From NCBI GenBank assembly GCA_002269645.1, contig NIVC01000014.1, positions 1 through 64,000 of the forward strand: a stretch of DNA of 64,000 nucleotides. Reading direction: 5' to 3'. This DNA is from Macrostomum lignano (taxonomy: Eukaryota). Position 1 is the first letter of the stretch; the number at the start of each line of letters is the position of its first letter. A program made the position numbers and the translations under genes. The notes beneath the pieces were generated by a model that did no database searches, had not been told where the DNA came from, and worked only from the letters and a program-made list of their open reading frames with translations. Shown here piece by piece: positions 1,758 through 44,151 of this stretch.

Positions 1758-1948
1758 GAGTAGAAGAGTAAGACAAAGTCGAGGGGTGTTGATTGACAGA
1801 GTCGCCTTTTTATTTTGAAGTCAGAAAAGTTTTGAAACAGTGCTTAAATTTAGTTTTAATTTTTTATCGCGCAATATTTAATGCTACTGTCTATTTCTGT
1901 GAATTTATAATCCTTTAAAGTCGAACCGCAAACCATACGCAACACACA

Positions 1949-4900: not shown

Positions 4901-6230
4901 CAAGGTTTGCTTTGATTGTTTTGTTTACATTTCCACTCGATGAATCATTGTTTATTTAAAGTTCGGATTAATCATCCTGTAAACTAAATCTACAGAAAAT
5001 GTCAGTTCCGAATCAATGATCTTCAATCATCGTGTTGAAGGTCTTGTAGGTGTGCTCTTGATCACGCTCTTGATGTGCTAAAATCTACAGAAGGTTTCAA
5101 TCATTGTGTTGAAGCCGTTTAGACTGAAGTTCTTCAATCATCGTGTTGAAGTTCCCGACGGTCTGTCAGTCTAATCACGTACCACAATCTTTAGAAGTTA
5201 CATTACGCTGAAGTTCAATCATCGTGTTGAAGTTCCCGACGGTCTGTCAGTCTAATCACGTACCACAATCTTTAGAAGTTACATTACGCTGAAGTTCAAT
5301 CATCGTGTTGAAGTTCCCGACGGTCTGCCAGTCTGATCACGTACCACAATCTTTTGAAGTACAATCATCGTGTTGAAGTTCCCGACGGTCTGCCAGTCTG
5401 ATCACGTACCACAATATTTTGAAGTACAATCATCGTGTTGAAGTTCCCGACGGTCTGTCAGTCTAATCACGTACCACAATCTTTAGAAGTTACATTACAC
5501 TGAAGTTCAATCATCGTTTTGAAGTTCCTGACAGTCTGTCATGCTGTGGAACTGCAGAAAATCCACAGGTTTCTAAATCGCTAGTTAATTTGCATTCACG
5601 CAGGTGCCCGGAGTCGCTAACACCGTCTCCCGCGACAATGGCGTCCGTCCTAGCAGCATGGAAGCGATGAGCAAGCTCAAACCGGCCTTTGTCAAGCCTC
5701 ACGGCACCATCACAGCTGCCAATGCCAGCTTCCTCACTGATGGAGCCTCGGCCTGCCTTCTAACCACCGAGGAGACGGCCAAACGACTCGGCTTGAAGCC
5801 GAAAGCTTACCTGCGCGATTTCATGTACGTTAGCCAGGACCCGAAAGATCAACTGTTGCTAGGGCCTGCCTATGCGACGCCGCGTATTCTAGAGCGCAAC
5901 GGTCTGAGCCTGGCAGATATTGACGCTTTCGAATATCACGAAGCATTCGCTGGTCAGATATTGGCTAATTTAGCCGCTTTGGATTCGGACTATTTTGCTA
6001 AGCAATACATGGGCAGGCAGGCTGGCAAGTATGGCGCTCCGCCTATGGACAAATTGAACTGCTGGGGCGGCAGTCTGTCTATTGGGCACCCGTTCGGAGC
6101 TACTGGCGTACGCTTGGTCACGTGCGCAGCTAATCGCCTGTTGAAGGGCAGCGGCCAGTTAGCTTTGGTTGCGGCGTGCGCTGCTGGCGGTCAGGGACAC
6201 GCTATGCTGGTTGAGGCCTATCCTCAGTAG
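1949..6230 (+). CDS. HADHB: Mitochondrial trifunctional enzyme beta subunit (3-ketoacyl-CoA thiolase); exons 1949-2480, 4628-4904, 5604-6230; 1-nt deletion near 2416-2418
   Basis: Arg-rich transit peptide, VEGVRTPF, thiolase catalytic Cys (QACISSNQA), His ([10 protein letters not shown]) and Cys (ACAAGGQG). GT-AG junctions join in phase (AG|G, AAG|GTG). A frame change at ACCGGGCTG restores [19 protein letters not shown]. Confidence 0.95.
2495..4605 (+). repeat. Minisatellite filling HADHB intron 1, about 28-34 bp unit GTCTCTAATCATGCTAGCATATCAGCACACACAG
   Basis: Roughly 60-65 tandem variant units; includes an approximately 196 bp higher-order duplication (identical ORF translations from about 3255 and from 3451). 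Confidence 0.95.
5005..5530. repeat. Tandem repeat (about 60-82 bp units, core CAATCATCGTGTTGAAGTTCCCGACGGTCTG) in HADHB intron 2
   Basis: Five near-complete copies plus degenerate flanking copies. Confidence 0.85.
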
Positions 6231-6539
6231 TTTTACTGTTATTATTACTATCAGTAGTAGCAGTAGTATATTAGATATGGAAGATCAATTAAAGTTGCTC
6301 GAGAAAATATTCTGGGTGTCATTTTGACGTTATTTGTTTCTGAATTTGAAAAAATCGTTTTATAACTATATATTGCTATGTAAGCTGAATCGTAAAGTTT
6401 TTTCTGTTAAAGAATTTTCCGTTTAATATCATAACTACTAATAAGAGTAAGTCTGACGTCTACATTATACTTAGTCTATATTTTGGTCTATAATTAAGCA
6501 GGCACACAAACTTAGTCGTTAGGCTGTTATTAATGTGCC

Positions 6540-7260
6540 GTCTGTTGTTGTTGTTAAACGGGGATGGAAAGCCAGGGGCTTACCGCGGATCAGCCCGAAA
6601 GGGGGCTCTGCCGCAGGGATCTGACTGTGGGCCATACTGCCAGGGGCATGTAGCCCGAGAGGCCACGATTGGGACCAGAGCTCAGGACTCTGGTGAGAGC
6701 AGGAGCATTGGTGCTACTAACCCAAACCTACGGTACAAGACACCGCCAACCCAAAAGTGGAATCAGGGACGGTGCTAGGACCGAGTCCACCCAGGCCACC
6801 ACCCAGCAGACAAAGTCCTCGGGAGTGCGCTGAAAAAATTGGAAATGCGTAAAAAGTTTGGGTTATTACTGAAAGCGGTCCGAGAGCGGGGAAACCCCGA
6901 AGTCTACGGAAATGGCTTGATTATTGGAGCGAGTCTGGAAGGCTTGTTTCCGAGGGCGTGACTCTAGGCAGGAAGACCGTCTACCGGCTACAAACCCAAG
7001 GGTATCGCCTATCCAGCTCTGTATTGGAGGCCAGGCCAAGGGGTCGGGAAGGGGCACAAGGGGCAAGAGGACCCGGACTCAGCCGGTATCCCCGATTCGG
7101 GACAAACATCCAACCCAGGACACCAATCCACTGTCAGGATGAGAGCCAGAGACACTTAGGCAGGGAGACAACCAGAGGAGCCAGCAGATGGACCAAGTAC
7201 AGCGCAGGATTGACCGGGCAGGGAGGGCAGAGCTCATAACTCCGGAAAATTAGAGCGGCA
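6540..7260 (-). mobile_element. Probable 3' end of a non-LTR retroelement with an (AAC)n tail
   Basis: GC-rich island in AT-rich intergenic DNA ending on the minus strand in AACAACAACAAC. No protein motif recognised. Confidence 0.35.
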
Positions 7261-8069
7261 GTCAAAGGCCTTACATTAAGATAAAACTGATAAAAATGTG
7301 CCGTTTAGACATTGGTCAACTTCTACACTACACAGTAAGTTAAAGTGGTAATTTATACTAAATAGGCCTCAAAGTAGTAAGTAGACGAAAAACAGGAGTT
7401 TTCTTTAACCGAGAGCAAAACTTCTGGGGCACTTGTGTAGATACCTATAGTAAGCTAAAATATTGCTGATAAGATCAATTGTGCATTATCTTTTTGTTTG
7501 AACGGAGAACTGCATTCTTTACAATAGTTTTTGTGCTTAAAAATGAAACCAGTTTTAAGTATGTAGTAGTAAGTTTATTAGTTATTATTGCCAATAATTC
7601 CATCTATTAAGATTGTGACTGGCACACATTGTTAAGTTGAGTTGAATATCAACATTTGACATTTAATAGACTTCAGTTATTGAATATGGTTGCGAATATG
7701 GCTAGTGTCTTCTGGCCTTTTCTATTTACTATTAAGTCCATAAATTTACTAGTATAAAACCTTTTAATCATCGTTTTCTTATCCATAAATACAACCATAA
7801 AATGATGCGTGAGTGTGGAACGGTGCGCTAATTAATAAATACTTTATTTCGAGGAATTCAAGTATCGTTGCGTGCTGGTTTCTTTTGTTGTTATAACTAG
7901 CCGCACTGTTTGCTTACTTCTCTCTGCCTTTTGTGATTGATTGACAGGTAGCTAACTTTAATTCTCTTCGGTTATTGATCTTATCGTTTTCTTGTTGTTC
8001 TTCTCTGCTAATAGGGGTAATAGTATAACTATAATAGTTCTAAGGATAGCTTGTTGCAGTCTAGGCTAT

Positions 8070-9418
8070 AACACACTTAAACGATAGACACCTGTATAAC
8101 AACACACTTAAACGATAGACACCTGTATAACAACACACTTAAACGATAGACACCTGTATAACAACGCACTTAAACGATAGACACCTGTATAACAACACAC
8201 TTAAGCGATAGACACCTGTATAACAGCACACTTAAACGTTAGACACCTGTATAACAACACACTTAAACGATAGACACCTGTATAACAACACACTTAAACG
8301 ATAGACACCTGTATAACAACACACTTAAACGACAGACACCTGTATAACAACACACTTAAACGATAGACACCTGTATAACAACACACTTAAGCGATAGACA
8401 CCTGTATAACAGCACACTTAAACGATAGACACCTGTATAACAACACACTTAAACGATAGACACCTGTATAACAACACACTTAAACGATAGACACCTGTAT
8501 AACAACACACTTAAGCGATAGACACCTGTATAACAGCACACTTAAACGTTAGACACCTGTATAACAACACACTTAAGCGATAGACACCTGTATAACAACA
8601 CACTTAAGCGATAGACACCTGTATAACAACACACTTAAGCGATAGACACCTGTATAACAGCACACTTAAACGTTAGACACCTGTATAACAACACACTTAA
8701 ACGATAGACACCTGTATAACAACACACTTAAACGATAGACACCTGTATAACAACACACTTAAACGATAGACACCTGTATAACAGCACACTTAAACGATAG
8801 ACACCTGTATAACAACACACTTAAACGATAGACACCTGTATAACAACACACTTAAACGATAGACACCTGTATAACAACACACTTAAACGATAGACACCTG
8901 TATAACAACACACTTAAACGATAGACACCTGTATAACAGCACACTTAAACGATAGACACCTGTACAACAACACACTTAAACGACAGACACCTGTATAACA
9001 ACACACTTAAACGATAGACACCTGTATAACAACACACTTAAACGATAGACACCTGTATAACAGCACACTTAAACGATAGACACCTGTACAACAACACACT
9101 TAAACGATAGACACCTGTATAACAACACACTTAAACGATAGACACCTGTATAACAACACACTTAAACGATAGACACCTGTATAACAGCACACTTAAACGA
9201 TAGACACCTGTACAACAACACACTTAAACGACAGACACCTGTATAACAACACACTTAAACGATAGACACCTGTATAACAACACACTTAAACGATAGACAC
9301 CTGTATAACAACACACTTAAACGATAGACCCCTGTATAACAACAAACTTAAACGATAGGCACCTGTATAACAACACACTTAAACGATAGACACTTGTATA
9401 CCAATACACTTAAACGAT
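8070..9418. repeat. 31 bp minisatellite ACACTTAAACGATAGACACCTGTATAACAAC
   Basis: About 43 highly homogeneous tandem copies. Confidence 0.95.
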
Positions 9419-9948
9419 TACAGCTTAATCAGTTGAAATACGAGTATTCACTTTACTAGTAGATACATGTATAACTGAATGTCTTCAAGTTAGAATTCAT
9501 TAACTTCAAATTTAAATAGTTGTGTGAACTTAACATGTACGCGCTATGGTACATCTGCAACATAGCAGGTTTAACTGTTTCCACTCTTACACGTATACAG
9601 TAGTACAATATAGTTTCGCTTGATCGCAATGAGGCGACGAAGAGTTTAAGACTTCTATCAATTGCATTTTAAGGTTCAGTAATCTATAAGCATGAAAGCT
9701 AAAGACTTTTGCAGCTTTTCGAGGTTAGAGAGGCTTAGAAATACAAATTTTAGAGTAGAAAGTATTGGTATTTGATTTGATTTTGAACTGTCTGACTGAT
9801 TTTGGACGCTTAAAACACCCGGTTAATATATAATCAGTAGAGTGGTATAGTATGATAGGCAGTTTATAATTAAAGTGCTAAAAAATTACACTTGTACCTT
9901 GCACCTGTCGTGATCCTATAGCACGCATGCTTCCATACACTTTTCCAG

Positions 9949-11686
9949 CCTACCGTAAAGTATCACGTGACCGTCAGCTTCCACCGCGTGTCGGTCGATT
10001 GCTGCCCAGAATTCCAACCGAGTCAGTTAGGCGTTGCTTTAGTTAAATCGACGAAACGGCGCTCCACGGAGCTCTCTGATTGGTCGGCACAGGCAGCCAA
10101 TCCGAGCGTTCGCTGCGTTAATTGGCTCTCGCCTCAAACTGTTGATTTAACGGCCAAGTTTAAATTCCGAAATGATTCAACGGAGCGCGGCCGCTATCAA
10201 GACAAGATCTGGCGACTACAAGTTGAGACTAAGAAGCGAAAGACCATCATGCCTAATAGCCGGGTTGAGGTAGCTCGATGTCGCATCAACTTGGCTGAGT
10301 TTGTCAGCTCTGACCTAATTGAGCAGAGAGTTTCTGAATTAGCGACTTACAGTCTGACGCCCACCGATCCTAGACTGGTCAGTGGAGTTTTTCCGAACTC
10401 TATGTAATTAGGGTTGCACTATTTGGAAGTGTAGCTTCCTACTTGTAAGTAGTATTAGAGTGGCTATAACAAATACCCTTTTCACTCATTCACTTTTTAC
10501 CCACATTACAGGTAACTGCTGCAAGTGTGTCGCTAACCGTCTATACAATCGGGATTAAAAATCCTGATGAAGGATTTCTAAGGCCAAATCAGCAACTAAA
10601 CGACTCTGATGTTGGTGGTGGTGGCTCTGATGAACCACCAGTAACTTCGCCGTGTTTTTCCAAAGCGCAGGCCCTCGCTACGAACCAATCAAATACTTCT
10701 CAAACGTTAGCAGAGCTTTCGTCAGACAAGGATGCCTTGATTCAGGGTACTCAAGGTGCTCAGCCTCTGGTTGATGCAGCTGCCGGGGACCCAGTTGCAG
10801 TGACCGGTTTGCAGAAGTCTCTAGTTGATGCAGCTGCCGGGGACCCAGTTGCAGTGACCGGTTTGCAGAAGTCTCTAGTTGATGCAGCTGCCGAGGACCC
10901 AGTTGCAGTGACCGGTTTGCAGAAGTCTCTAGTTGATGCAGCTGCCGAGGACCCAGTTGCAGTGACCGGTTTGCAGAAGTCTCTAGTTGATGCAGCTGCC
11001 GAGGACCCAGTTGCAGTGACCGGCTTGCAGAAGTCTCTAGTTGATGCAGCTGCCGAGGACCCAGTTGCAGTGACCGGCTTGCAGAAGTCTCTAGTTGATG
11101 CAGCTGCCGAGGACCCAGTTGCAGTGACCGGCTTGCAGAAGTCTCTAGTTGATGCAGCTGCCGAGGACCCAGTTGCAGTGACCGGTTTGCAAAGTTGCCA
11201 AACTACAAACGATGACAAACAGTTTAATCTCTCTATTTTGAGTAGTACTACTTCGATTCCTGAGTCGGGTAATCAGTCAGAGCTGAGGCTGGATTCGCTG
11301 AAGTCAAATGAAGCATTGCGCGATATCGCTAGGACACGAGTAAATATAAATGATACGCTTCAGCTGCAGTCGCTTCTCGCTAGAAGTTCCAGGAGCCATT
11401 TGCCGAATCAAATGCCTGCTGTTGTTTCTCACCAAGAGTCGCGCCAACAATTCCTGGAACTCACTGACAGTCTTATTTCGTGGACGAAGGAGGCGCTGAA
11501 AAGCTATCCGCTGGTGTGCAATTCAGACTGGGCTGTTGCGGGATTTCGCGACGGTGTGGTTCTGTGCGCCATCATTCACAAGCACAGACCGGATCTAATT
11601 GATCTTCGAGCTGTCATCGGGACTGGAGGCAACGCTCGCAGGTTTTCTATGGTGATGGAGGCCGCTAATGTTCTCGGCATTGAACG
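9949..11686 (+). CDS. EHBP1-family gene A: NT-C2 (EEIG1/EHBP1-type C2) domain, 18-aa repeat linker and calponin-homology domain; exons 9949-10377 and 10512-11686; start possibly ATG 9927 with a 1-nt frameshift; terminal exon not identified
   Basis: KYHVTVSFHRVSVDC...VARCRINLAEF resembles the EHBP1 NT-C2 (ALATSSINMKQY). LISWTKEALKSY...GFRDGVVLCAIIHKHRPDLID is a type-2 CH motif. The phase-0 junction CTG|GTCAGT...TTACAG|GTA keeps frame. Confidence 0.75.
10767..11192 (+). repeat. Coding VNTR, 54 bp x 8 (SLVDAAAEDPVAVTGLQK)
   Basis: In-frame tandem repeats in the NT-C2/CH linker of gene A. Confidence 0.95.
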
Positions 11687-11797
11687 GTGAGAGTGGTCAC
11701 TAACAGTTACTAATGAGTTTGTGTAACAATCATGCTCCATTCGGTAGACTTAACCACTAGGCTACAACCGAATGGAGCATGATTGTTACACAAACTC

Positions 11798-12890
11798 GGG
11801 TCTATGAAATTTGCTTGCGAGAAGTTTGCTTGCGGGACTTTTGCTTGCCGAACTTTGCTTGCCGAACTTTGCTTGCCGAAGTTTGCTTGCCGAACTTTGC
11901 CTGCCGAACTTTGCTTGCCGAACTTTGCTTGCCGAAGTTTGCCTGCCGAAGTTTGCTTGCCGAAGTTTGCTTGCCGAAATTGCCTGCCGAAGTTTGCTTG
12001 CCGAAATTTGCCTGCCGAAGTTTGCTTGCCGAAGTTTGCCTGCCGAACTTTGCCTGCCGAACTTTGCTTGCCGAACTTTGCTTGCCGAAGTTTGCCTGCC
12101 GAAGTTTGCTTGCCGAAGTTTGCTTGCCGAAGTTTGCCTGCCGAAGTTTGCTTGCCGAAGTTTGCTTGCCGAAATTGCCTGCCGAAGTTTGCTTGCCGAA
12201 CTTTGCTTGCCGAGCTTTGCTTGCCGAACTTTGCTTGCCGAGCTTTGCTTGCCGAACTTTGCTTAACGAGCTTTGCTTGCCGAACTTTGCTTGCAGAAAT
12301 TTTGCTTGCCGAGGTTTGCCAGCCACAGTTTTCTTGCGGAATCTTAAAGAACCTATTATTGAGCTCTTGTATTTCTAATTTTTATTTTCTAAGATTCGTG
12401 GAAGTCGCCTATAGTGTTATGATTTTGTATGAGGATATGACGGATTTGAAAAGCCCTCCTAATGCAGAAATGGAATAATTGAGTTTTTTACTGGGAATAC
12501 ATTTTCAACAAAAATTGGACACAATTTCGAACAATGCACATATCGAATGATTTAGGCACCGAAGTGTACAGAATAGATTTTTTGGAAATGAACGTACATT
12601 GTACATCAATGTACATCATTTCTATATACTAAATTCTTAGAATGAAACTCTATAAGCCTAGTTTGAAAGCTTAGTGTCAAGTCAGTTTACGTCGACGCTG
12701 ATAAGAATCCACTTGCAAAGCATCTGTAGTAAGTAATAATTGACTGACCAACTTCACAAGCAATCAAAACAAGCAAGCAGACAAGAAAATAATTCGGCAA
12801 GTTAAAATCTTGCAATTGTGATTGCGAGTTTCAAGGAAACAGACATCAAAATTCCGCAAGCAAAGTTCGGCAAGCAAACGTCGTACTCCC
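11798..12890. mobile_element. Foldback/MULE-like non-autonomous element with subterminal 14-15 bp arrays (TTTGCTTGCCGAAG)
   Basis: Termini GGGTCTATGAAATTTGC and GCAAACGTCGTACTCCC match the termini of the element at 53408-54015. No TSD visible here. Confidence 0.6.
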
Positions 12891-13075
12891 TAGTGATTAG
12901 AGCGTCGGACCCACGACTGAAAGGTCGGAGGTTCGATTCTCGACCTACTGGACCCACTGGGGTAATTGAGAGTTTGTGGCGACTGGCGACACCCCCCAGT
13001 CCTTGGACTGAACAGCCGTACGCAGCCTTCAGATGCGCCGCGCAATAGCCCGATTGGGCCAGGTGTAATCAATTA
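12885..13075 (+). mobile_element. tRNA-derived SINE-like fragment (family 2)
   Basis: A-box-like TAGTGATTAG and B-box GGTTCGATTC with tRNA-like spacing, but no complete cloverleaf. Confidence 0.45.
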
Positions 13076-13076
13076 C

Positions 13077-13372
13077 TGTCATAAATGCGCAACAGTCGGC
13101 CGATCCGGCCGACCGATTTGGCGGCCAACCAAGGAAGTCGCAAAAATGCCCACCCAAAAAATACCAAAGTAGTAGTACTAAGTAGCTGACGAGGCATTTT
13201 GACTTAATAAGACAGTCATAGTTACTCCTGTCGTTTACCCAAAGTTGCGTTAATTTTGCATTAGGGTTTTTTTACATGTAAGTCGCATTTTTGGCCAAAA
13301 ACTACGTCGCATTTTTGTAAAAACTAAGTCGCATGGCCGACCGAATTTTGGAGGTTGCGCATGTATGATTAC
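13077..13372. mobile_element. Candidate MITE
   Basis: Imperfect inverted ends CATAAATGCGCAAC and GTTGCGCATGTATG; internal AGTCGCA repeats. Confidence 0.35.
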
Positions 13373-13901
13373 TGTATTGTTATTATTAATTCGTTTGAAG
13401 CTATTCGTTTATAGTTATTCAAATACTCTGCGCAGGCAATCGGCTGCTGAGTCCGGCGCCACTACAGCGCCACTACACTACAACGTTCCTCCTACGTGTG
13501 GGTTTTAACTTTTAAAACTAAGCCAATCAATTTAAAAATATGCCATGGCAGAAAGGCTAATGGCTAAAGTTGGAGTTTAAATTTTTATGCTCGCGAAACA
13601 AACCAAATTGATAGCAAAAAAACCTATTTTTTCAGTTCTTATATCTGACTTTCAGGCAAACAAGACTATAGTGTACAAATGCGATTTTTTATAGAGTTGA
13701 AGTTTTTTAAAACTGTAACTTGATATTTTTGTTTGGAACTATATTGTTTTCTATTCTTTTTGAATATTAGAAAGTTTTTCTACCGTTTTTATACAGTTTT
13801 AAGCGTTAAAATTGAACCAATTTACGCAAGCAGGAATGTCTTTTTATTGCATCTACCGCTGTTTATCTATACAATATCTAAAAGTACATTCCTGAAATCC
13901 T

Positions 13902-14064
13902 GCACTCGGCAACATGTTAAAGTTTCCACTAAAGTCTAAAGCTGGTGAGGATCGAGCTGTCGGTTGCACGCTGGCCATTTGAGCCGATTTAATCTATTAT
14001 TGTCATTGTTATTATTATTGACCATTGGTTTTAGGGTTGGAAATTTTAACATGTTGCCGAGTGC
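13902..14064. mobile_element. MITE with 27 bp terminal inverted repeats
   Basis: GCACTCGGCAACATGTTAAAGTTTCCA versus TGGAAATTTTAACATGTTGCCGAGTGC (1 mismatch). Confidence 0.6.
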
Positions 14065-14584
14065 TAACAAATTACAAGATTAGAGATTAGAGAAGATTTC
14101 GTATCTTCCAAAAACACAATCTCAATTTTATCAATTATTTTTTGGCTGTACTTCTTTTACAACATAACAATCACAGTGTATGGTTTTTAATGTTTTTTAT
14201 TAAAATTTATTAGAAAACACGCGGAAAAAACGTAGATTGATCCTCTTATCTCGTGTGTTTTGTTATTTGTCTAGCTATAACAATTTTGTAGCTAATTGAA
14301 GTTGTTTTAGGTGGATGCAGATGATACATTAGGATACATCAGCAACGCCTAGACCATCCTGACACTGATGGTCTCGCAACACAATAGTTCAGAAATTCTC
14401 TGTCAACAACTGACTTAAAGTTTAATAAAGTTTTTCTTTGGCTAGAATGTGAAGCTTCGATATCCCACAACCCAAGGCAGAAAAGAAAGCTGCAAGAATG
14501 TCAATCTGATTTCGTGTATACAATAAACAGCGTTTTTTGAATTCATATTCCATAAGAGATAAGATAGTAAAGGAGAAGTAATCG

Positions 14585-15125
14585 AGTAGAGAGGAGAAGA
14601 AAGAGGAGACGAGAGATTAGAGATTAGAGACGATAGAAAAGAAAGAGGAGACGAGAGATTAGAGATTAGAGACGATAGAAAAGAAAGAGGAGACGAGAGA
14701 TTAGAGAAGAAAGAGGAGACGAGAGATTAGAGATTAGAGACGATAGAAAAGAAAGAGGAGACGAGAGATTAGAGATTAGAGACGATAGAAAAGAAAGAGG
14801 AGACGAGAGATTAGAGAAGAAAGAGGAGACGAAAGATTAGAGAAAATAGAAAAGAAAGAGGAGACGAGAGATTAGAGAAAATAGAAAAGAAAGAGGAGAC
14901 GAGAGATTAGAGAAAATAGAAAAGAAAGAGGAGACGAGAGATTAGAGAAAATAGAAAAGAAAGAGGAGACGAAAGATTAGAGAAGAAAGAGGAGACGAGA
15001 GATTAAAGATTAGAGCAGAAAGGAAAGGCAAGAGAGGCGACAAGAGAGAAGACAAGGGGAAAGAGGAAAAATACCCAAGGAAAGATAGACGAGAGACAAA
15101 AGGAGATGAGAGAAAAAGAGGGAGG

Positions 15126-15172
<47 letters not shown>
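14585..15172. repeat. Purine-rich composite repeat followed by a (GA)n microsatellite (about 15129-15172)
   Basis: Units AGAAAGAGGAGACGAGAGATTAGAG, then a perfect GA run, just upstream of the putative gene B 5' UTR exon. Confidence 0.85.
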
Positions 15173-15178
<6 letters not shown>

Positions 15179-15414
15179 AGAGAGCTGAGATCAAAGAGAC
15201 AGACTTTGAGCGTGCCGGATTGCCATTGTGGAGTTTCAGAGGACCCGAAGGTCGGATAGAGACTTCGAGCTTATGAAAGCGAATCTCGTGTAAGCTCTTT
15301 TGTCTGGGAGCGGATTGGCCTGTCTGGAAAGACAATTTAGTTAGCTGAGCTTAGAGAAGAGCAATCTGATGAAAAAAAATTATAATACTCTTAACTTTTC
15401 TTATTTCTGCAGCT

Positions 15415-16034
15415 ATGCAGCAGCAGCAGCAGCAGCTCATCGTCAGCTTTGCGTGCTTCTCAGTTGAGTCCCCTCCGAAGTCAAAGCGCCCTCTCCGTGA
15501 GTTGTCGGCAGTTGCTGCTCCAAACGATGCTGCAACAATCAGAAAACCTGGCGGCAGTGGCGTTCTTGATCGTCTGTTAAGGAAGTCGCTGCGCAAAAGC
15601 AAAGGGTGTCGTTGGCTTCACCGCACGGAGCCGCAGTGTTGGAGTTTATCGGCGAATTCCGCCAACGCCCGTCGCTTCTGCGGCACTGCCGCGGACTGCG
15701 GCGACTCCTCCGTCGCATTCGTCTTCTCTTGCGTCCCGTCTGATTTGTGGAAATTTGCCCTGTTAGAATCTGCTGCTAATAGAAGCTTTGCTAGCACCGC
15801 AGAGTGCAAGATTATTGCTAGTAGATCGGTAAAGATCCTTGAACTGGCGGGCATTGCTCGGGCTGTCAATGGTGGAAATCAATGGCTTGCAGAGCTGCAG
15901 CTTCGGAGCAAGTCTAAAAAGGTAAAGCAATTAGGTTAGAGCAAATCTGAGGTAAAGTTAGAATTAATAAGCCAAGTTTAGGATAAGGAAAATGTTAATC
16001 TTTGATAGTTTTCACTTTGGATAGATAGATAGAT

Positions 16035-16073
<39 letters not shown>

Positions 16074-16123
16074 ATAGATAAATAGATAGATAGATAAATA
16101 GATAAATAGATAGATAGATAGAT

Positions 16124-16214
<91 letters not shown>

Positions 16215-16227
16215 GATAGATAGATTA

Positions 16228-16298
<71 letters not shown>

Positions 16299-16305
16299 GA
16301 TAGAT

Positions 16306-16370
<65 letters not shown>

Positions 16371-16371
16371 G

Positions 16372-16433
<62 letters not shown>

Positions 16434-16450
16434 CAGATAGATAGATAGAC

Positions 16451-16510
<60 letters not shown>

Positions 16511-19500
16511 CAGATAGATAGATAAATAGATAGATAGATAGATAGTCTCAAATACATTTTAACTTCAAAGGAGGTTTTTAGCAAAAATTTCTAATTTCAA
16601 AGCACGTTCTGTTCTGTTAGGGCGTTTCATATTCCTCAACAGACGCAGTACTTGGTGAATATAGAATTTGGAGACTGTAAATTTAGGTTTCTTTAAGGAC
16701 TCCAGCCGGTATCAAAGCCTATCCTATAATTCCAATTAAAACCTGTGCAACAGGTAGCATTCGCAAGCCTGTCTCTGCTTCTCCGATTGCACTGTCCGAC
16801 TGTTGCCTCTGAACTGAACTTGCCACGGCCCGAGCCGCAGCATCCGTCATCATCAGTGAGCAGTCTCAGTCAAGTTGTTGAGCCACTTCCCAGTGTACAG
16901 CCATCCAGCCCAGACTCGATCGCTAACTTTCAAGCTTCTCCTCTAGAAAGCGAGTTCACGGACAGCCTTCTGGCTTGGAGCCAGCAGTGCAGCCAAGGCT
17001 ATCGATTTGTGCAGATCTCTAATCGGCATACCTCGTTTCGCAATGGTCTGGCATTTTGCGCCATAATTAATAGATTTGCACCTTGGCTAATTGATTACAA
17101 TTTTCTTACTAACGACATGCGTGAGAATCATCGTTTGGCGTTTGCAGCCGCTAGACAGCTGGGCGTTGACAGGTGCGAAGCTGATGCTATAATTTTTTAT
17201 GTTGTCGATATTTAGTTACTCGCAATATGCAAGGGAACGAAAATCATTTATTGGAATCCTTGAAAAATCAAAGCGGCCCCCTTAGCAATTCCCTCGTAAG
17301 CCTTGATATAGAAGTAAAACAATATAGTAGGTTTCCATGCTTTTGACACACTTCAGAGTCCCCGATCCGGCAGATCTGGTGCTTCATCGCATCCCAAGCC
17401 CTGCACTAATTGGGGCATTTCTGCGCCAACTGCGAGATCGACTTGGTAGACAGGCGCCTCTAAGAGGTTCAGGCCAGCGGGTGAACTTTAGTGACGATGA
17501 AGATGACTGGGTAATTCTGGATGCTGGAGAGTTTGACAATCAACGCGACAACTGCCTGGTGGTGTACTCACTAGAAGCGCAATCTCACTTTAGGACTCAG
17601 TCACTTGTGGCTCTTCAAATTGACTGGTCATCGTGTGCCGTTCTGTGACTTGAGTAACTTGAGTATTGCGAGAGAACTTTCTATAGCAGAAAATCCCATT
17701 TTGATTATCTCATAATCTCGTCTTTCATAACCGATCGGGGCCCTTTTTGTTTTTTGCATCATTTGCGTTCGATTTCTTAGTAAATCTCTTGTTTTAAACG
17801 ACTTTCTTATGTAAATAAAATTCAAAATGATTTAGCCTTGATATCCCCTGTCCCCCATCCTTTAGTGTCTGTCTGTCTGATCCTCAGTTGCTGGGCCAGC
17901 CTCCCAGAGTGTCAGTTGCTGGGCCAGCCTCCCAGAGTGTCAGTTGCTGGGCCAGCCTCCCAGATCCCCAGTTGCTGGGCCAGCCTCCCAGATCCTCAGT
18001 TGCTGGGCCAGCCTCGCAGATCCTCAGTTGCTGGGCCAGCCTCCCAGATCCTCAGTTGCTGGGCCACCAGCCTCCCAGATCCTCAGTTGCTGGGCCAGCC
18101 TCGCAGATCCTCAGTTGCTGGGCCAGCCTCTCAGATCCTCAGTTGCTGGGCCAGCCTCCCAGATCCTCAGTTGCTGGGCCAGCCTCCCAGATCCCCAGTT
18201 GCTGGGCCAGCCTCCCAGATCCCCAGTTGCTGGGCCAGCCTCTTGGGTCCTCAGTTGCTGGGCCAGCCTCCCAGATCCTCAGTTGCTGGGCCAGCCTCGC
18301 AGATCCTGGGATCAGCCTCCCAGATCCTCAGTTGCTCAGCCAGCCTCCCAGATCCTCAGTTGCTGGGCCAGCCTCCCAGATCCCCAATGTTTTATTTCAT
18401 CAGAAAGAACAGTAAAAGCAGAAGTGGAGTATTCCCAGTCTCCAATTCTCATTATTGCAGGCGGAAGTGCAGCTCAAGGCCCGCATTTCGTCAGCTTCGT
18501 TAATCTGCGCAGCAGGCTTCAACCCTGGTAATCTTCGTGTGACGCTGTCAGCTTCATCTCCAGATTCATCTTCAACTTCATCAACCATCTCGGCTAGCAC
18601 AGAGCCAAGCAGCTGGTCGGCCTGCCTGTCCAACCCTCGGGGCTGCCGTCTTGACTGGTCTAGCAATCCACAGACTGTCATTCTGTCCACTCCGAAGGCA
18701 AAGAAATGTTTTAGAGGCTCGGTGCTGCTTAAATATTCTGAACCGACTTCTCTGTTGGCAACCAACCTGACGGTCACACTTGAAGAGCATCGCTGCAGTC
18801 AGGGGAATGGACAGCGGCTTCTGCGGAGGTCTCCTCTGTCTTCTGTTCTCAGTTCGACTAGGATTAAACCGTTGGCCCGGTGCCAGCTAGATCTGGCGTC
18901 GCTAGATCTCATCGATCCAGCTGGCAATGAGAAGAGTTTGGAGCTACAATTGGATTTAGTGCCTAGCGAGCGGATGGCTAAAAAGGTTGCTTTGCTGTTT
19001 CTGTGTTTTCTCATGCTTTTTTCATGCTGTTGCCATGATGTTGCTGTGCTGTTGCTATGATGTTGCTGTGCTGTTGCTGTGCTGTTGCTATGCTGTTTCT
19101 ATGCTGCTATGCTGTTGCCATGCTGTTGCCATGCTGTTGCTATGCTGTTATGGTGCTGCTATCCTGTTATGCTGTTGCTATGCTGTTGCTATGCTGTTGC
19201 CATGCTGTTGCTATGCTGTTATGGTGCTGCTATCCTGTTATGCTGTTGCTATGTTGTTGCTATGCTGTTATGCTGTTGCTATGCTGTTGCTATGTTGTTG
19301 CTATGCTGTTATGCTACTGCTGTGCTGTTAGCTTTTGCTTTGCTGTTATACTGTTGCAATGCTGTTGCCATGTTAAGTTTTGTACCGTGTTGTTGCTATG
19401 CTACGTTGAATTGCAGTTAATAATTCGTTGCTAATTATTCGCGGATAAAGCTAATCCGCGAAAATGAGTAATTCAGTTGAGTTATAACAAATTTCAGATC

Positions 19501-22101
19501 GAATCTGGATCAGTCAGCCTCACTCTACACTCCGTTGTACAAAACCCGTTAGCCTTGTTATTGACGCAATCAATACCGGTAGATCAGTCTGACACGATGA
19601 CAGAAAATCAAACAAAGGCAGTCACGATCAAAGCCAACAGAAGTCTGTCAGATTTAGACATGTCAGAACTCGAACAATTGTTCACCTGGGCTAGAGAATC
19701 AACAGCTAATTGTCCCGGAGCTGTCGTACAAAATCTCAGCACCTCGTTTCGTAGCGGCCTGGCCTTCTGCGCTATTGTTGAGCGGCACAGGCCGAGGCTG
19801 TTGGACTATGGGGCGGCTGCTGAACTCGCTGCGACTGGGCCTTCTGGCTGGCTGCAGTGCCATCTGATGGCCGCTGAGGCTGCTCGACGGCTGGGGGTGA
19901 CCAGGTGAGGACGTACTGCTTGTCCCGTTGAAAAGGTTACAACTGTAGAAGCGACTGTTGAGTCACGTGAGCTGCTGTCGTTATGTGAAAGTCGTCTAAG
20001 AGTCGTGCTAGCGCTCAAATTTCTAACAAATCCAGTTGGTATTTCGAAATATACTCAGCAACATGGAAAAGTCGCCATCAAAGAAGATTCCGTCTGTGGA
20101 CGCCAATTTTGAGAGCGCGGGTAAAGTCTCTCAATCTTTGCGAGTGACGCAACTTAGGTACACCGTGGCAGACTTGAGTTGAGGAATGAAGTGGAGGGAG
20201 CGGTGTGCGAGGGTTGGACGGATTAAAGCTGTCCCGATCAGTTTTCTCGCGTCTTTTATTTCAGAATTGTCCAAGAGAAAATGCTCACTGGCGCATTGAG
20301 TGACGACTTTTCAATTTTTCTGAGTATACGATTTTGATTCATAAAAAATCAACTCATTCAGACGCAACTCAGTGGCTCTACAGCCCCAGAGTCAGTATTG
20401 AAGCGCCTCAGATTCACAGGCAGTAAAACAACCTAAATTGACTTCTTGGCCTGGGTACCGATTTCATCGGGTGTTGCGGGTGCCCACTGAAGTGTCACTG
20501 GGGCCACAGTAACAATTAAATTTGTGCCTCTCCGTATCCCTCCCACCCAGACTGCCGGACCCAGCCGAACTGATCAGCCGACGAACTCCCGACGTTCCTA
20601 CCGTGCTTGACTTTCTCCAACAGTTGAGGCGCTGTCTCGCCTTGAGTAGTCCCCACTGCGATCAGATTGACCACCACCAGACTGACATGCAGGATGTCGA
20701 AATTGTTGACATTGTCGATCACAGCCCCGACGCCGCTATGCAGCTGTTGATCCGTCGACAACAGGAACTGGTTGATGAGCGGTGCTGTTTGAACCGATTG
20801 TGCGCCGATCTGAGCGACTGTTTGAGTAGGTCTGCGACGCCGGGTTCTGGCGCGGTGGCTGCCGGGGTTCGAGGCCTGCTGGCCGACTGGTACAGCCTGC
20901 TGATGCGCCGGCTGCTGCTGCACAACAGGTGGCAACAGTTGGAGCTGATGCAGCGGGAACTGCAACAGTTAAATCGGTTGGAATCGCTAAAACGAAGGAT
21001 TCGCAGGCATCTGCAGGCAGGTGAGGACGAGGTGATGTGGGGGGAGGGCGAACATGGCTGACTCTCGCGCTTAACGACCCCTGGTTCTATTCCGCGCGCG
21101 GTCATATTCATTTGACTTGTGTACTTGTGACCCGTTATGGAAATCAATAACGTTGCTTCAGGGCGACAAAAGATAGCGCCGCATGAGTGCCTGAGGCGCT
21201 ATACGAGCTAATGAGTGCCTGCGGCGCCAAAATGAGTTCCTGAGGCGCTATACGAGCTAATGAGTGCCTGCGGCGCCAAAATGAGTGCCTGAGGCGCTAT
21301 ACGAGCTAATGAGTGCCTGCGGCGCCAAAATGAGTGCCTGAGGCGCTATACGAGCTAATGAGTGCCTGCGGCGCCAAAATGAGTGCCTGAAGCGCTATAC
21401 GAGCTAATGAGTGCCTGCGGCGCTAAAATGAGTGCCTGAGGCGCTATACGAGCTAATGAGTGCCTGCGGCGCCAAAATGAGTGCCTGAGGCGCTATACGA
21501 GCTAATGAGTGCCTGCGGCGCCAAAATGAGTGCCTGAGGCGCTATACGAGCTAATGAGTGCCTGCGGCGCCAAAATGAGTGCCTGAGGCGCTATACGAGC
21601 TAATGAGTGCCTGCGGCGCTAAAATGAGTGCCTGTGGCGCTAAAATGAGTGCCTGCGGCGCCAAAATGAGCGTCTGCGGCGCTAAAATGAGTGCCTGCTG
21701 CGCTAAAATGAGTGCCTGCGGCGCTAAACTGAGTGCTTGCGGCGCCAAAATTAGTGCTTGTATGTACTCAGGAGTCAGTGGAATGGACAGAATTGCCATC
21801 CGCACTATTTGTAGGGGACGGATGGCGCCCTCGGTTTAAGCATCTCACCGACTTATAACAACCATTAAAACCCAATAAACGCATTTCAGAAGGCCAATGC
21901 CAGTCGCTGGATCCGAAGCTGTCGCGAGAGCTGGCCAGAGAATTGAAAAGGCGAGACCGACTGCTCGCTCAGCTGGATCGCTTGGAGATTCGTTCGGCTA
22001 CTGAGCAGCAGATGGCCACCAGGGCGATCTGTCAGGCAGCTGCTGCCGATGCTGTTGATGATGCTAGTAAAGGCAGTTGGCAGGCATGCAGCCTGCTGTG
22101 A
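15415..22101 (+). CDS. EHBP1: EHBP1-family gene B: NT-C2 - CH - NT-C2 - CH - bMERB-like coiled coil - CaaX; exons 15415-15921, 16754-17172, 17357-17510, 18461-18985, 19498-19904, 20551-21020, 21890-22101
   Basis: Two CH motifs (SFRNGLAFCAIINRFAP, SFRSGLAFCAIVERHRP) completed by PDP.DL...P exons. Two NT-C2 cores (IIASRSVKILEL, PLARCQLDLASL). C-terminal LLADWYSLL...LQQLNRLE / RRDRLLAQLD resembles bMERB. Ends CSLL*, as EHBP1 ends in CaaX. All junctions are GT-AG and phase-compatible. Confidence 0.75.
16020..16545. repeat. (GATA)n microsatellite, imperfect
   Basis: Direct reading; intronic. Confidence 0.95.
17878..18385 (+). repeat. 28 bp minisatellite CTGGGCCAGCCTCCCAGATCCTCAGTTG
   Basis: Intronic tandem array; the same unit occurs inverted at 22618-22979. 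Confidence 0.9.
18990..19410. repeat. Degenerate ATGCTGTTGCT low-complexity repeat
   Basis: Intronic; source of the spurious Cys-rich ORFs. Confidence 0.85.
21157..21755 (-). repeat. Minisatellite (AATGAGTGCCTGCGGCGCCAA family) shared with the hAT element at 46988-47974
   Basis: The unit and flank TTCAGGGCG(A/C)CAAAA(G/T)ATAGCGCC match the reverse complement of about 47831-47855. Confidence 0.8.
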
Positions 22102-22617
22102 GGGCGATTGTCGGCGCGTGCACAAGTATTAAACTGTGATTCAGTGTCAGTACAACCGATTTCATTTTACTGTACTGGGATCTGTCCTTAGGATATGGGA
22201 TAGTTTGACTTTCGTTTCTTGGAAAAATGAGTTCTCACAGATATGAGTAGACAAGTCTGTTTAATAGTTAAACAATTTTTTCTTTCTGGCCCTAGTGTTT
22301 AACATTCCGGTAACTTAGACTCATATTTTGATCTCTCTCCCTGTCGTTTTGTTGCATTCTTCGCATAGCTCGTATAGGCTTTCTGCCGTTAACTTGTTCC
22401 ATTGTGTGACTAACAGCTTATTACAGTTAATGTTATTATTCTGACAGAACCAGCTCGTTTGCCTGTAGAGTAAAACTATTTTTTCTGTCTACAACTTTTT
22501 ATAATAAAAACGAAATATTTTTAAATGATTTTTTGAGCCCGTTGTAAATAAAATAGTCGGGATTCTCAGTTTTCATTTTGTACTATTCATTAGTTTAACA
22601 GTCAACTGCAGTGCGGC

Positions 22618-22979
22618 CCGGCAACCAAGAAACTGGGAGGCTGGCCCAGCAACTGAAGATCTGGGAGGCTGGCCCAGCAACTGAAGATCTGGGAGGCTGG
22701 CCCAGCAACATGAGGATCTGGGAGGCTGGCCCAGCATCTGAGAATGTGGGAGGCTGGCCCAGCAACTGACACTCTGGGAGGCTGGCCCAGCAACTGGGGA
22801 TCTGGGAGGCTGGCCCAGCAACTGAGGATCTGGAAGGCTGCCCAGCAACTGAGGATCTGGGAGGCTGGCCCAGCAACATGAGGATCTGGGAGGCTGGCCC
22901 AGCAACTGAAGATCTGGGAGGCTGGCCCAGCAACATGAGGATCTGGGAGGCTGCCCAGCAACTGAGGATCTGGGAGGCA
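22618..22979 (-). repeat. Inverted copy of the 28 bp minisatellite at 17878-18385
   Basis: Unit CAACTGAGGATCTGGGAGGCTGGCCCAG is the exact reverse complement. Confidence 0.9.
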
Positions 22980-26600: not shown

Positions 26601-29600
26601 TACTGAATCTACTTAATAGTCTACTTAATCTAGCCAGTAGTCTACTCAATCTACCCAATAGCCTACTCAATCTACTCAATAGTTTACTCAATCTAGTCAA
26701 TCTACGCAATAGTCTACTCAATATCTACAAAACAATTTACTCAATAGCCTGCATAATCAGCTCAGTAGTATACCCAGTCTACCTAAAAATCTACTTGACA
26801 TACCTAAAAACCGACCTAAAAAGCCTAACAGACTACTAAGCAGTAGCATCATCCTTAAACGAATAATAATAACAAACTATTGATAAAACGCACCACATGA
26901 AGCCCGTCGGACTTCTTAGCCTCCTCAAGTTCCGCCTCCCTAGCCTTGGCCTCCGACAGTTCAGCTTGCAAGGCCTCGCATCGACGTTGCAACTCGTCCA
27001 GCTGGTGTCTGAGTTCAGTGGCCTCAGCGGCACCGTCTACAACCAGACGATCGCGTTCAATGGACGCCGAGTCGACATCTTCGCGAAGTTGATCAACCTC
27101 AGACTGGCTGGTTTGCAACTGAGACTCCAGGCTTGCTAGTCGACGTTGGAAAGACTGCGCGATGGGTACAAATTTTCCATGTAACATGCTTCTAAACTAC
27201 TGACTCAAAATAGTAGCATAGTTGCTCATGAATTTTAGTTAATCTGCCTTTCATATCTTTTGTAGTGTTCTACAGAAAATACTACGAGTAATTTATGGCT
27301 TGATTGCTTTTTCACAGGTGCAATACATACTACTTAATTTCACTTGCTACTGAACAGACCAGTGTCATTTTGAGGCCGTAGCCTAGTGGTCGGGCGCGGC
27401 GCTCTGAAGTGCCAGGGGCCCAGGCTCGATTCCCAGTGCAGTCACATCAATTTTTGGAGCTAAATTGGAATCTCAGCTTGGCTCTGCTCGTGCAATTACC
27501 AGCCTTTGAGGGCCAACCCCCAAGGCACAGTGAAGTGTACATGCCTAACGATAAATACAGTTAGGACCGCTGTACGCTCTTGTGAGTGTGTGCCTGTGCA
27601 TATGACTGCGTACATATCCGCGCGTTTGTGTGCCTGCTCAGGGGAGTCAGCGGAATAGGCAGGCAGTAATGCCTCTCGCCGGTTGTGTGACAATGTCGCT
27701 TTACACAGCCCCCTGCCTCCAATAAAAACCCCAAAGGCAAAGAATGTGTGCACTGGTTGACGATGACAAAGTGAGGGCCGCTGTACACGCTGTGTAAGCG
27801 TGTGCATTTTCAGGGTTCAGCGGAATTTACCATTACTTCGCTCGTAAGATTCTAGTCAGATTGAAGCTCTTAACCTTGACCAGTAATCTTGTCATAGCCA
27901 AGCAGATTTACAATCATTTTGTAGATTAGATCATACCCACCTGAGCCTCGGCTTCCCGTTCGGTCTTCATCTCTGCCAGTTGTTGCTTCATCGCTGCAGC
28001 AGCTTCAGCCGCCAAATCAAGGAAATTCATCGCCGCAGTCTCGCCCTCGTTATCCTCGCCCGAGTCTGAAGATTTCACATCCAACGCTTCGACCAGATTG
28101 TCAATCTTTTTCAATATCCGCATCAAAGTTGATCGGCCAGCATCTGCGGAGGCAGCTTCCGTAGCGGCCAGCTTCTCTCGAGCTTCATCAGCCGCCTCCA
28201 AATTGGCCCGATTCTCAGCCGTCAATTCGACAATCTGAGCTCGAAGTTCGGCCTCAATAGCTTCTTGACCACTGGCTAATTGATCCATCCGCAGAGCCTG
28301 CTCCTGCTCAAGCAATTCACATTTCGCTCGCCAATTATTCGCCTCGGCTGTCACGGAAACCAAATCCGATCGCAATTTAGACAGTTCGGCGTCTTTCGAC
28401 TCTTCGCCAGCTTCAACTTCTAGCAATCGTTGCAGCTGCTCTTGACACTTAGCCAGCCAGTTCTCAGCTTCTGCTGATTTGGCTAAACAATCGGAACGGG
28501 CTTGAGTAGCCTCAGCCTCAGATGCTTCCAGTCGGCTGCTCAGCTCCTTTAACTCATTCTCCTGTTCATTGCAGCGAGCCTTCAAAGTATCCACCTCGGC
28601 CGCTTTGGTGTCACAGTCAGCTCGCAGCTCGGCTAAGACTGCCTCGCTTGCCTCCTGACTGCTGCCAAACTGCTCCAGCTGGCGTCTGTGCTCTTCGCTG
28701 CTGGACCGGAGTTCGTCAAGCTCCAAACACTTGGCTTCAAGATCAGATCGCGATTGGCCTAATTCAATTTCTTTGGCTTCTAGTTGGCTTCCCAGTTGAG
28801 CTAATTGATGCTCAAGCTCCTGACACTTAGCCAACCAATTTTCAGCTTCGGATGCTTTGGCTGCGCAATCTGACCTCAGCTGGGAGAGTTCGGTCTCTCT
28901 GGCTGCTAAATCGCTGCAAAGCTGCTCCAAATGTTGCTGATGCTCTTGACGAGCTGCTTTCAAGTCGTCTGTCTCGGCAGATTTTGCTGAATATTCGGAT
29001 TTCAATTGTGTTAGCTGGTCTACATGGGCCTGCATGGCTGTCTCTAGCTCTGATTGCGCTTCCTGACACTTGGATCGCCAGTGCTCTACATCTGAAGCTG
29101 CTGCCTCGATGTCCGATCTCAGCTGCGAGATTTGAACTTCGTGAGAATGCACCGTGGCGTCAAGTTGATTTTGAGTTTCTTGGAATTTAGCTCTCCAGTC
29201 ATCCGCTTCGGTAGATTTCGCTTCAAGCTCCAATCTTAATTGAGACAGTTGCGCTTCACTTGACTCATAATGTTCGCTGGTTTCTTGGTATTTTAACTTC
29301 CAGTCGTCAATTTCAGCATTTTTCGCTTCCAGCTCGGACCGGACATGGGTCAGCTGAGCATCGGCCGTCTGCTGGCCCCCGTCCAGCTCGACTTGCAGCT
29401 CTTGACACCGGCTCTTCAGGCTATCAACTTCGGACACCTTTGCATCGAATTCAGCTTTGAACTGAGACACTTGAGCTTCGTGCGATTCAAGGCATTTATT
29501 GAATTCAGATTGAATCTCTTGGCATTTCGTTGTCAATTCTTCTACCTGAGAATTTTTCGCTTCAACCTCGGAACGCAATTCAGCAAATTTTGTATCCATA

Positions 29601-43714: not shown

Positions 43715-44151
43715 GCCAGCACCAGGGGCGCCAGCACCAGGGGCGCCAGCACCAGGGGCGCCAGCACCAGGGGCGCCAGCACCAGGGGCGCCAGCACCAG
43801 GGGCGCCAGCACCAGGGGCGCCAGCACCAGGGGCGCCAGCACCAGGGGCGCCAGCACCAGGGGCGCCAGCACCAGGGGCGCCAGCACCAGGGGCGCCAGC
43901 ACCAGGGGCGCCAGCACCAGGGGCGCCAGCACCAGGGGCGCCAGCACCAGGGGCGCCAGCACCAGGGGCGCCAGCACCAGGGGCGCCAGCACAAGGGGCG
44001 CCAGCACCAGGGGCGCCAGCACCAGGGGCGCCAGCACCAGGGGCGCCAGCACCAGGGGCGCCAGCACCAGGGGCGCCAGCACCAGGGGCGCCAGCACCAG
44101 GGGCGCCAGCACCAGGGGCGCCAGCACCAGGGGCGCCAGCACCAGGGGCGC
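43715..44151. repeat. 15 bp GC-rich minisatellite GCCAGCACCAGGGGC x about 29
   Basis: Nearly perfect array (one variant near 43993) abutting the 5' end of the RTE fragment. Confidence 0.95.

Follow-up and report, generated by a model that had tools for sequence, protein, structure and literature searches.

In a 64,000-nucleotide stretch of the Macrostomum lignano genome (positions 1 to 64,000 of the forward strand of contig NIVC01000014.1, assembly GCA_002269645.1; this whole stretch is called the window hereinafter), three modules related to EHBP1, each with an NT-C2 or NT-C2-like domain followed by a CH domain, lie in tandem on the forward strand. They are read here, with a probability of about 0.75, as a head-to-tail array of three old and strongly diverged EHBP1 paralogues, each being a gene of its own with its own stop codon. 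An earlier reading of the same stretch from its letters (the sequence-only reading) had recognized an EHBP1-family locus formed by tandem duplication, which was borne out. It had also joined modules 2 and 3 into one polypeptide (its gene B) with the order NT-C2-CH-NT-C2-CH-bMERB-CaaX, and this part was not upheld, since the annotation splits the two modules and gene 2 reads through the proposed junction at 17510 to a CaaX box (CAVL) and a stop.

M. lignano is a free-living flatworm, the genome of which is rich in repeats and partly duplicated (PMC8629364). In the GenBank annotation of NIVC01000014.1, three genes are placed at 9949-13508 (450 aa), 15424-17648 (402 aa) and 18461-22101 (536 aa), which are referred to as gene 1 (BOX15_Mlig010636g1), gene 2 (BOX15_Mlig029639g1, PAA94130.1) and gene 3 (BOX15_Mlig011486g3, PAA94131.1), respectively. 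This annotation is based on RNA-seq, and its transcriptional units were cut at experimentally mapped spliced leader (SL) and poly(A) sites (PMC5730564). The locus record used for the analysis (L001, positions 8461-32101 of NIVC01000014.1, GCA_002269645.1) was identical to the window at 8461-32101. The same three-gene array was also found at two further genome loci (copies L002 and L003), and the copies are 97-100% identical. The features of the three genes in the window are as follows.

9949..10377 (+): gene 1 exon 1; most of the NT-C2 domain; begins directly after the acceptor TTCCAG, and the deposited 450-aa protein starts here
10512..11686 (+): gene 1 exon 2; last C2 strand, linker with a 54-nt x 8 repeat, first ~70 CH positions from ~11442
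13436..13508 (+): gene 1 terminal exon, truncated; the frame ends with PPTCGF and a stop (tail GIERQSAAESGATTAPLHYNVPPTCGF, then stop)
15413..15921 (+): gene 2 exon 1; very diverged NT-C2-like domain; acceptor CTGCAG at 15412/15413, genomic ATG at 15415, deposited coding sequence (CDS) from 15424 in a CAG run
16754..17172 (+): gene 2 exon 2; last C2 strand, linker, first part of CH
17357..17648 (+): gene 2 terminal exon; end of CH, disordered acidic tail; CaaX box CAVL at 17634-17645, stop at 17646-17648
17814..17819 (+): AATAAA, 166 nt past the stop of gene 2 and likely its poly(A) signal; conserved in all three copies
18461..18985 (+): gene 3 exon 1; NT-C2 domain with Ser-rich loop insertions; begins directly after the acceptor TTGCAG
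19498..19904 (+): gene 3 exon 2; last C2 strand, linker, first part of CH
20551..21020 (+): gene 3 exon 3; end of CH, bMERB-like helices 1-2 from ~20726
21893..22101 (+): gene 3 terminal exon; bMERB-like helix 3; CaaX box CSLL at 22087-22098, stop at 22099-22101

Gene boundaries and the proposed fusion

All exon boundaries listed by the sequence-only reading carry GT and AG, and its exon model is translated in frame without a stop. Translation of 15424-15921, 16754-17172 and 17357-17648 reproduced PAA94130.1 exactly (402 aa). The rebuilt gene 3 translation was likewise identical to PAA94131.1, the deposited protein beginning with AEVQLKAR at the acceptor 18461. When a protein search was performed with the fused model, one 100%-identical match was returned, namely PAA94131.1 ('hypothetical protein BOX15_Mlig011486g3, partial', Macrostomum lignano). 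For gene 1, a query trimmed in its repeat matched the deposited Mlig010636g1 protein with 100% BLASTP identity and 100% coverage, and the L002 equivalent matched PAA94245.1 exactly.

Gene 2 is translated across the donor proposed at 17510 for 45 further codons, up to IDWSSCAVL and a stop, and its open reading frame (ORF) is intact in all three genome copies with the CaaX box kept. In the tail ORF (17511-17645, 135 nt), 3 substitutions were counted over 270 compared sites, all three being synonymous and at third positions, while the 187 nt past the stop had 14 substitutions plus indels over 374 compared sites, about 3-4 times the rate of the tail; over exon 3 as a whole, 4 of the 5 substitutions are synonymous. 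This pattern, for which the substitution counts are small and agree in direction, argues that the tail is coding and that module 2 is a complete gene. The tail itself is predicted to be disordered (predicted local distance difference test (pLDDT) below 35 in the AlphaFold2 (AF2) model). It includes the motif DDEDDWVIL (17493-17519), which is shaped like the W-x-x-L motifs that interact with LC3 or bind adaptors and would be split by the proposed donor.

The fused product of the sequence-only reading would be an 897-aa protein (NT-C2-CH-NT-C2-CH-bMERB-CaaX), made by cis-splicing of 17510 to 18461 as the main product or a regular isoform, and is considered very improbable. Its junction is indeed in frame, with GT and AG, and the donor is kept in all three copies; this part of the claim stood, and the use of the junction did not, an in-frame junction being a 1-in-3 event by chance. 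The first Met encoded by gene 3 itself comes no earlier than residue 172, which speaks for the fusion, but the absence of an initial one is accounted for by a spliced leader that ends in ATG (see below). The boundary-aware annotation separates modules 2 and 3, and the read-through tail of gene 2, with its synonymous changes only, ends in a CaaX box and is followed by AATAAA; splicing at 17510 would lose this box. The remaining support for a fusion is UniProt A0A1I8HVX7 (P0031, from the older ML2 gene set), in which modules 2 and 3 are joined at the same acceptor, 18461. That entry, however, uses another donor (~17563, after NQRDNCLV) and omits part of module 3, that is, conserved exon sequence, so that it looks like a gene-finder artefact and probably needs splitting. 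With this entry, a fusion of modules 2 and 3 had also been predicted before.

Two wider joins were also considered. Given the stops at 13506-13508 and 17646-17648, a single gene cannot cover all three modules. Splicing of 11686 to 15413, which the sequence-only reading had named for checking, reaches a stop at 15462-15464.

Common introns, domain content and descent from EHBP1

Two introns are common to the three modules, as had been claimed, and boundaries, phases and alignment columns were all confirmed. The phase-0 junctions before the last C2 strand are PRL/VTAAS (10377/10512), SKK/VAFAS (15921/16754) and AKK/IESGS (18985/19498), and the phase-2 junctions inside the CH domain are GIE-R (11686), GVD-R (17172/17357) and GVT-R (19904/20551), for modules 1, 2 and 3, respectively. 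Both positions fall in the same alignment columns in the three modules and are used by the exactly matched deposited proteins. A canonical EHBP1 is encoded on other contigs of M. lignano (P0163, BOX15_Mlig009844g3, 796 aa, UniProt A0A1I8GLG7 'EH domain-binding protein 1'; NT-C2 54, CH 83 and bMERB 115 bits; CaaX box CSVQ). Its gene at 6001-10490 of locus L004 (NIVC01001258.1) has four introns, and two of these, a phase-0 intron at KPGSKK/VTSV and a phase-2 intron at GVP-R/VMDP, stand at both array intron positions, the other two not being common to the array. These common positions argue that all three modules, module 2 included, are tied to EHBP1 by descent. The canonical gene sits between an endoplasmic reticulum (ER)-lumen-receptor (KDEL receptor-like) gene and a gene for a GRIP-domain protein.

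The domain content was checked with Pfam at the cut-offs of 26 bits for CH (PF00307) and 25.2 bits for NT-C2 (PF10358). CH was recovered in modules 1, 2 and 3 (29.5, 57.1 and 42.4 bits, respectively), the NT-C2 threshold was passed by module 1 alone (30.3 bits), and bMERB (PF12130) gave no match at an E-value of 1 or below in modules 1-3. The tandem of three NT-C2 + CH modules is thereby borne out with two reservations, in that the NT-C2 of module 2 is weak and the CH of module 1 is incomplete in the window; no Pfam support was obtained for NT-C2 in modules 2 and 3 or for bMERB. CH identity among the array genes is 27-38%, the gene 1 CH being the most diverged (27% to the others).

Gene 3 is collinear with vertebrate EHBP1 from end to end (NT-C2, CH, bMERB, CaaX), and the earlier description of the last unit as NT-C2, CH, bMERB-like region and CaaX (CSLL) was right, with the bMERB below the Pfam threshold. 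The N-terminal 189 aa, also below the Pfam cut-off, matched the canonical EHBP1 NT-C2 end to end (BLASTP 7.6e-9) and module 1 (1.8e-5). In the AF2 model of gene 3, a beta sandwich (2-189), the CH helices and three long helices (370-404, 412-466 and 475-524) are predicted. With Foldseek, the NT-C2 model found C2 folds at template modelling (TM) scores of 0.65-0.67, and the top CH matches for both genes 2 and 3 were the EHBP1 CH 6zsh (TM 0.81-0.90) and 2d89. The bMERB-like region weakly matched the EHBP1L1 bMERB (BLASTP 4e-4) and the canonical M. lignano bMERB (0.002; 0 of 1000 shuffles reach the score of this latter match), and a vertebrate EHBP1 bMERB hidden Markov model (HMM) scored 9.7 bits, reached by 0 of 2000 composition-matched shuffles. 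A PDB-wide phmmer search with the region gave nothing significant. Gene 3 thus appears, from these comparisons, to be the only array member with a bMERB-like three-helix region and hence with the full EHBP1 plan in compact form. Its last intron has a NAGNAG tandem acceptor, of which 21890 was used by the sequence-only reading and 21893 by the deposited model; the residues at this junction are QAEGQ, QAGQ and QAAGQ in the proteins deposited for the three genome copies.

The N-terminal domain of gene 2 is far more diverged, most of the NT-C2 signature residues being gone. It matched the canonical protein weakly (BLASTP 0.002 over 118 collinear residues), the NT-C2 family HMM gave 6.3 bits (equalled by 3 of 2000 shuffles), hhalign gave a collinear alignment with a probability of 1.4% and an E-value of 0.037, and comparison with only modules 1 and 3, whether pairwise or by profile, gave no match. 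AF2 predicts a beta domain at residues 4-179, which matches dysferlin C2A at TM 0.60 in a model driven by EHBP1 alignment rows. Between the CH domain of gene 2 and that of canonical M. lignano EHBP1 the identity is 52%, and the model of the former superposes on the EHBP1 CH with a TM score of 0.90. When 1.8 billion representative proteins were scanned exhaustively with gene 2 (HMMER), no relative from outside M. lignano turned up that matched beyond the CH domain; two proteins with multi-stretch matches (P0158 and P0159) were set aside as unrelated proteins with 7-10 CH domains and no NT-C2. The tail from DDEDDWVIL to NQRDN, which MAFFT aligned with pieces of bMERB, was considered as a collapsed bMERB relic and rejected, as 1313 of 2000 shuffles scored as well against the bMERB HMM, which found no signal there, and the tail is disordered.

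Gene 1 has the best kept NT-C2 of the array (BLASTP 2.4e-16 to M. lignano canonical EHBP1) and, in the window, a CH covering profile positions 4-70 of 109 (29.5 bits). The missing second half was sought as an exon in 11687-15413, and none was found there. A deletion of ~245 bp after ~13469, common to the window and L002 (tblastn and DNA alignment; L003 4618-4871), takes out the last CH helix, an acidic Trp-rich tail and the CaaX box CCVM, all of which are kept in the L003 protein P0155; the truncated C-terminus of gene 1 in the window is due to this deletion in the terminal exon. Since the deletion is common to both, the window and L002 copies appear to be closer to each other than to L003. 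The gene 1 tail in L003 carries SDADWELDWEFVD, which resembles the acidic motif DDEDDWVIL of gene 2. An in-frame coding tandem repeat at 10765-11195 consists of eight 54-nt units (18 aa, DPVAVTGLQKSLVDAAAE), and the number of units differs among the genome copies. The GenBank model of gene 1 for the window omits 6 repeat units (450 aa versus 558 aa), which is probably a repeat collapse in transcript assembly. In the last intron of gene 1, a tRNA-like stretch at ~12880-12960 (with GGTTCGATTC) may be a remnant of a short interspersed nuclear element (SINE), with no match by ARAGORN or Rfam; scans of the whole window for tRNAs and Rfam families likewise returned nothing.

Having lost the end of its CH and its CaaX box, the gene 1 allele in the window may be in decay, and a fourth gene 1 copy (P0156) is frameshifted. 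Together with the loss of most NT-C2 signature residues from gene 2 and the strong divergence of the gene 1 CH, these facts could be taken to mean that genes 1 and 2 are decaying duplicates without functions of their own and that only gene 3 and canonical EHBP1 matter. This is held to be unlikely. The gene 2 frame is intact at three loci, its CaaX box is kept and its exon-3 changes are mainly synonymous, its CH is close to the canonical one in both sequence and predicted fold, and all three genes have transcript-based models; in addition, the paralogues are old, to judge from their CH identity of 27-38%, yet their frames are still open.

The three paralogues were compared with the known families. 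Gene 3 has the same order as EHBP1 and EHBP1L1 (NT-C2, CH, a three-helix region of the Rab-binding type and a C-terminal CaaX box), its CH finds the EHBP1 CH as the best structural match, and it has two introns in common with the M. lignano orthologue. The array proteins differ from EHBP1 (796-1500 aa) in being shorter (402-558 aa) and without long linkers. Human EHBP1 has five NPF motifs (PMC7442826), whereas none was found in any of the three array proteins, as the sequence-only reading had noticed. The conserved N-terminal peptide M-x-SVWKRLQR of EHBP1 is likewise absent from all three, and an upstream exon for it, sought before each module, was not found. A duplicated unit starting at an ancestral intron was considered in this connection and is unsupported, since the peptide and the start of the C2 domain form one exon in the canonical gene. 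Genes 1 and 2 lack the bMERB that EHBP1 has, and the NT-C2 domains of genes 2 and 3 and the gene 3 bMERB are below the Pfam thresholds. The array CaaX boxes ending in L predict geranylgeranylation, while the EHBP1 boxes CVLQ, CVLS and CSVQ predict farnesylation. MICAL-L1, MICAL-L2 and MICAL-cL also combine CH and bMERB and are effectors of the Rab8 family, and the MICAL-cL bMERB 5szh was among the few PDB sequence matches to the gene 3 C-terminus, covering nearly the whole domain without significance (E 5). MICAL-like proteins, however, have LIM domains and no NT-C2, unlike the array, and both sequence and introns favour EHBP1. Invertebrates, as far as is known, usually have one EHBP1 gene.

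Proposed spliced leader use and operon-like arrangement

All three deposited proteins are marked 'partial' and begin with a residue other than Met. The SL of M. lignano, CGGTCTCTTACTGCGAAGACTCAATTTATTGCATG, has ATG as its last three letters and is joined preferentially to acceptors of the form [T/C]TNCAG (PMC8629364); ~30% of the genes are trans-spliced, 15% are in operons, and the operon spacers are inflated by repeats (Ustyantsev and Berezikov 2021, PMC8629364). The AUG of a flatworm SL is a known initiator according to Cheng et al. 2006, as cited in PMC9851317. In the window, the sequences TTCCAG before 9949, CTGCAG before 15413 and TTGCAG before 18461 all fit the acceptor motif, and the leader ATG would continue in frame into the deposited CDS from 9949, from 18461 and from 15424 (an AG within the CAG run). 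SL trans-splicing could therefore release the mRNAs of the three genes, probably out of a precursor that they share wholly or in part, in an operon-like manner, with the terminal AUG of the leader as the start codon. On this proposal, the deposited proteins would lack Met and be called partial because the leader AUG serves as their start.

Counted from the predicted poly(A) site, ~625 nt separate genes 2 and 3; minisatellite accounts for 505 nt of this spacer, which lies within the repeat-adjusted rule of <1 kb for operons. The minisatellite is as follows.

17879..18383 (no strand assigned): 28-bp minisatellite GATCCTCAGTTGCTGGGCCAGCCTCCCA, making up most of the gene 2-gene 3 spacer; ~120 nt remain without the array, and the copy number varies among the genome copies

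A reverse-complement array of the same 28-bp minisatellite lies at 22615-22978, just downstream of gene 3, so that gene 3 is bracketed by inverted repeat arrays. In L003, genes 1 and 2 carry one transcriptional-unit prefix (Mlig029639g3 and g4), which hints at co-transcription. The array resembles the known SL operons of M. lignano in gene orientation, a short repeat-filled spacer between genes 2 and 3, [T/C]TNCAG acceptors and CDSs without an ATG of their own; if it belongs with them, an operon built from copies of a single gene would stand out as a special case. An SL-resolved, operon-like array is what we infer from the acceptors, the frame, the spacer and the deposited models taken together.

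Several points weigh against the reading of the locus as three separate, SL-resolved EHBP1 paralogues. The use of the SL and of the poly(A) sites, and the lack of 17510-18461 junction reads, are deduced from the deposited models and the sequence. The acceptor of gene 2 that fits the motif (15413) puts the SL ATG out of frame, and the ATG is in frame only from the CAG run at 15423/15424. Some deposited starts lie off an AG, namely 6 nt in for gene 1 of L002 and 21 nt in for gene 3 of L003, so that some deposited starts reflect cross-mapped transcripts, and the deposited CDS of gene 2 in L003 starts directly past a genomic ATG. The spacer between genes 1 and 2 is 1.9 kb raw, above the 1-kb operon rule, and ~1.3-1.4 kb when the tandem repeats found are subtracted. 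With the copies being 97-100% identical, the selection signal depends on few substitutions. The NT-C2 call of gene 2 and the bMERB call of gene 3 fall under the Pfam thresholds, and the AF2 models of these proteins are driven by alignments that hold true EHBP1 rows. Finally, the donor TGG/GTAATT at 17511 is intact in all copies, and a minor chimeric isoform is possible; in this weaker variant of the fusion, occasional cis-splicing of 17510 to 18461 would yield a double-cassette protein as a minor isoform.

Proposed activities and surroundings of the array

The NT-C2 of human EHBP1 binds phosphatidylinositol 3-phosphate (PI(3)P), phosphatidylinositol 5-phosphate (PI(5)P) and phosphatidylserine (PS), its CaaX box is prenylated and required for endosomal localisation, and its bMERB restrains the CH until a member of the Rab8 family (Rab8/10/13) binds (PMC7442826). 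Comparison of the copies indicates that all three units were ancestrally C2-CH-CaaX, with a bMERB in the third only. By analogy with human EHBP1, all three proteins may tether actin to membranes through their C2 domains and/or prenyl anchors. The CH of gene 3 would be held by its own bMERB until a Rab8-family GTPase binds, and gene 2 and the ancestral gene 1 would be anchored to membranes by C2 and/or prenyl groups with a CH unrestrained by any bMERB in cis. Without this brake, the activity of genes 1 and 2 might not depend on Rab, or their products might compete with those that are Rab-gated. The sequence-only reading had proposed two CH domains for one bMERB, with one CH escaping Rab gating; the fused linker falls away, and the escape could persist in another form, as the separate bMERB-less genes 1 and 2.

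A fuller version, which is tentative and rather doubtful, would be a three-cistron, SL-resolved array of EHBP1 paralogues beside canonical EHBP1, in which one cistron is Rab-gated and two encode 'brake-less' prenylated C2-CH linkers, the ATG-ending leader allowing 5'-truncated, promoter-less duplicates to be expressed. Paralogues without bMERB that keep their anchors and CH would be natural separation-of-function variants, and could reveal un-gated EHBP1 activity in a tractable, transgenic and regenerating animal. Apart from this, the array is an ordinary lineage-specific expansion of a gene family. Two annotation traps met in organisms with a spliced leader are also illustrated by the locus: 'partial' proteins may be complete once the leader AUG is counted, and in-frame GT...AG pairs between adjoining cistrons invite false fusion by predictors and readers alike. 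The gene identifiers were not mentioned in the papers or in the one supplement set that were searched.

Upstream of the array, exons of a thiolase gene resembling the beta subunit of the mitochondrial trifunctional protein (HADHB) lie at 1919-6227 (+); one of its introns holds several kb of minisatellite, and 3.7 kb separate its end from the start of gene 1, which has the same orientation. Downstream, a gene for a large coiled-coil protein (2194 aa in the annotation, with a 1306-aa ORF at 27929-31846) extends from 23657 to beyond 32101 (-), converging on gene 3, and is present at both other genome copies. Farther along the window, a GC-rich island at 42000-44200 (GC 0.68, against ~0.43 elsewhere) holds a long simple repeat coding for Pro, Ala and Gly.

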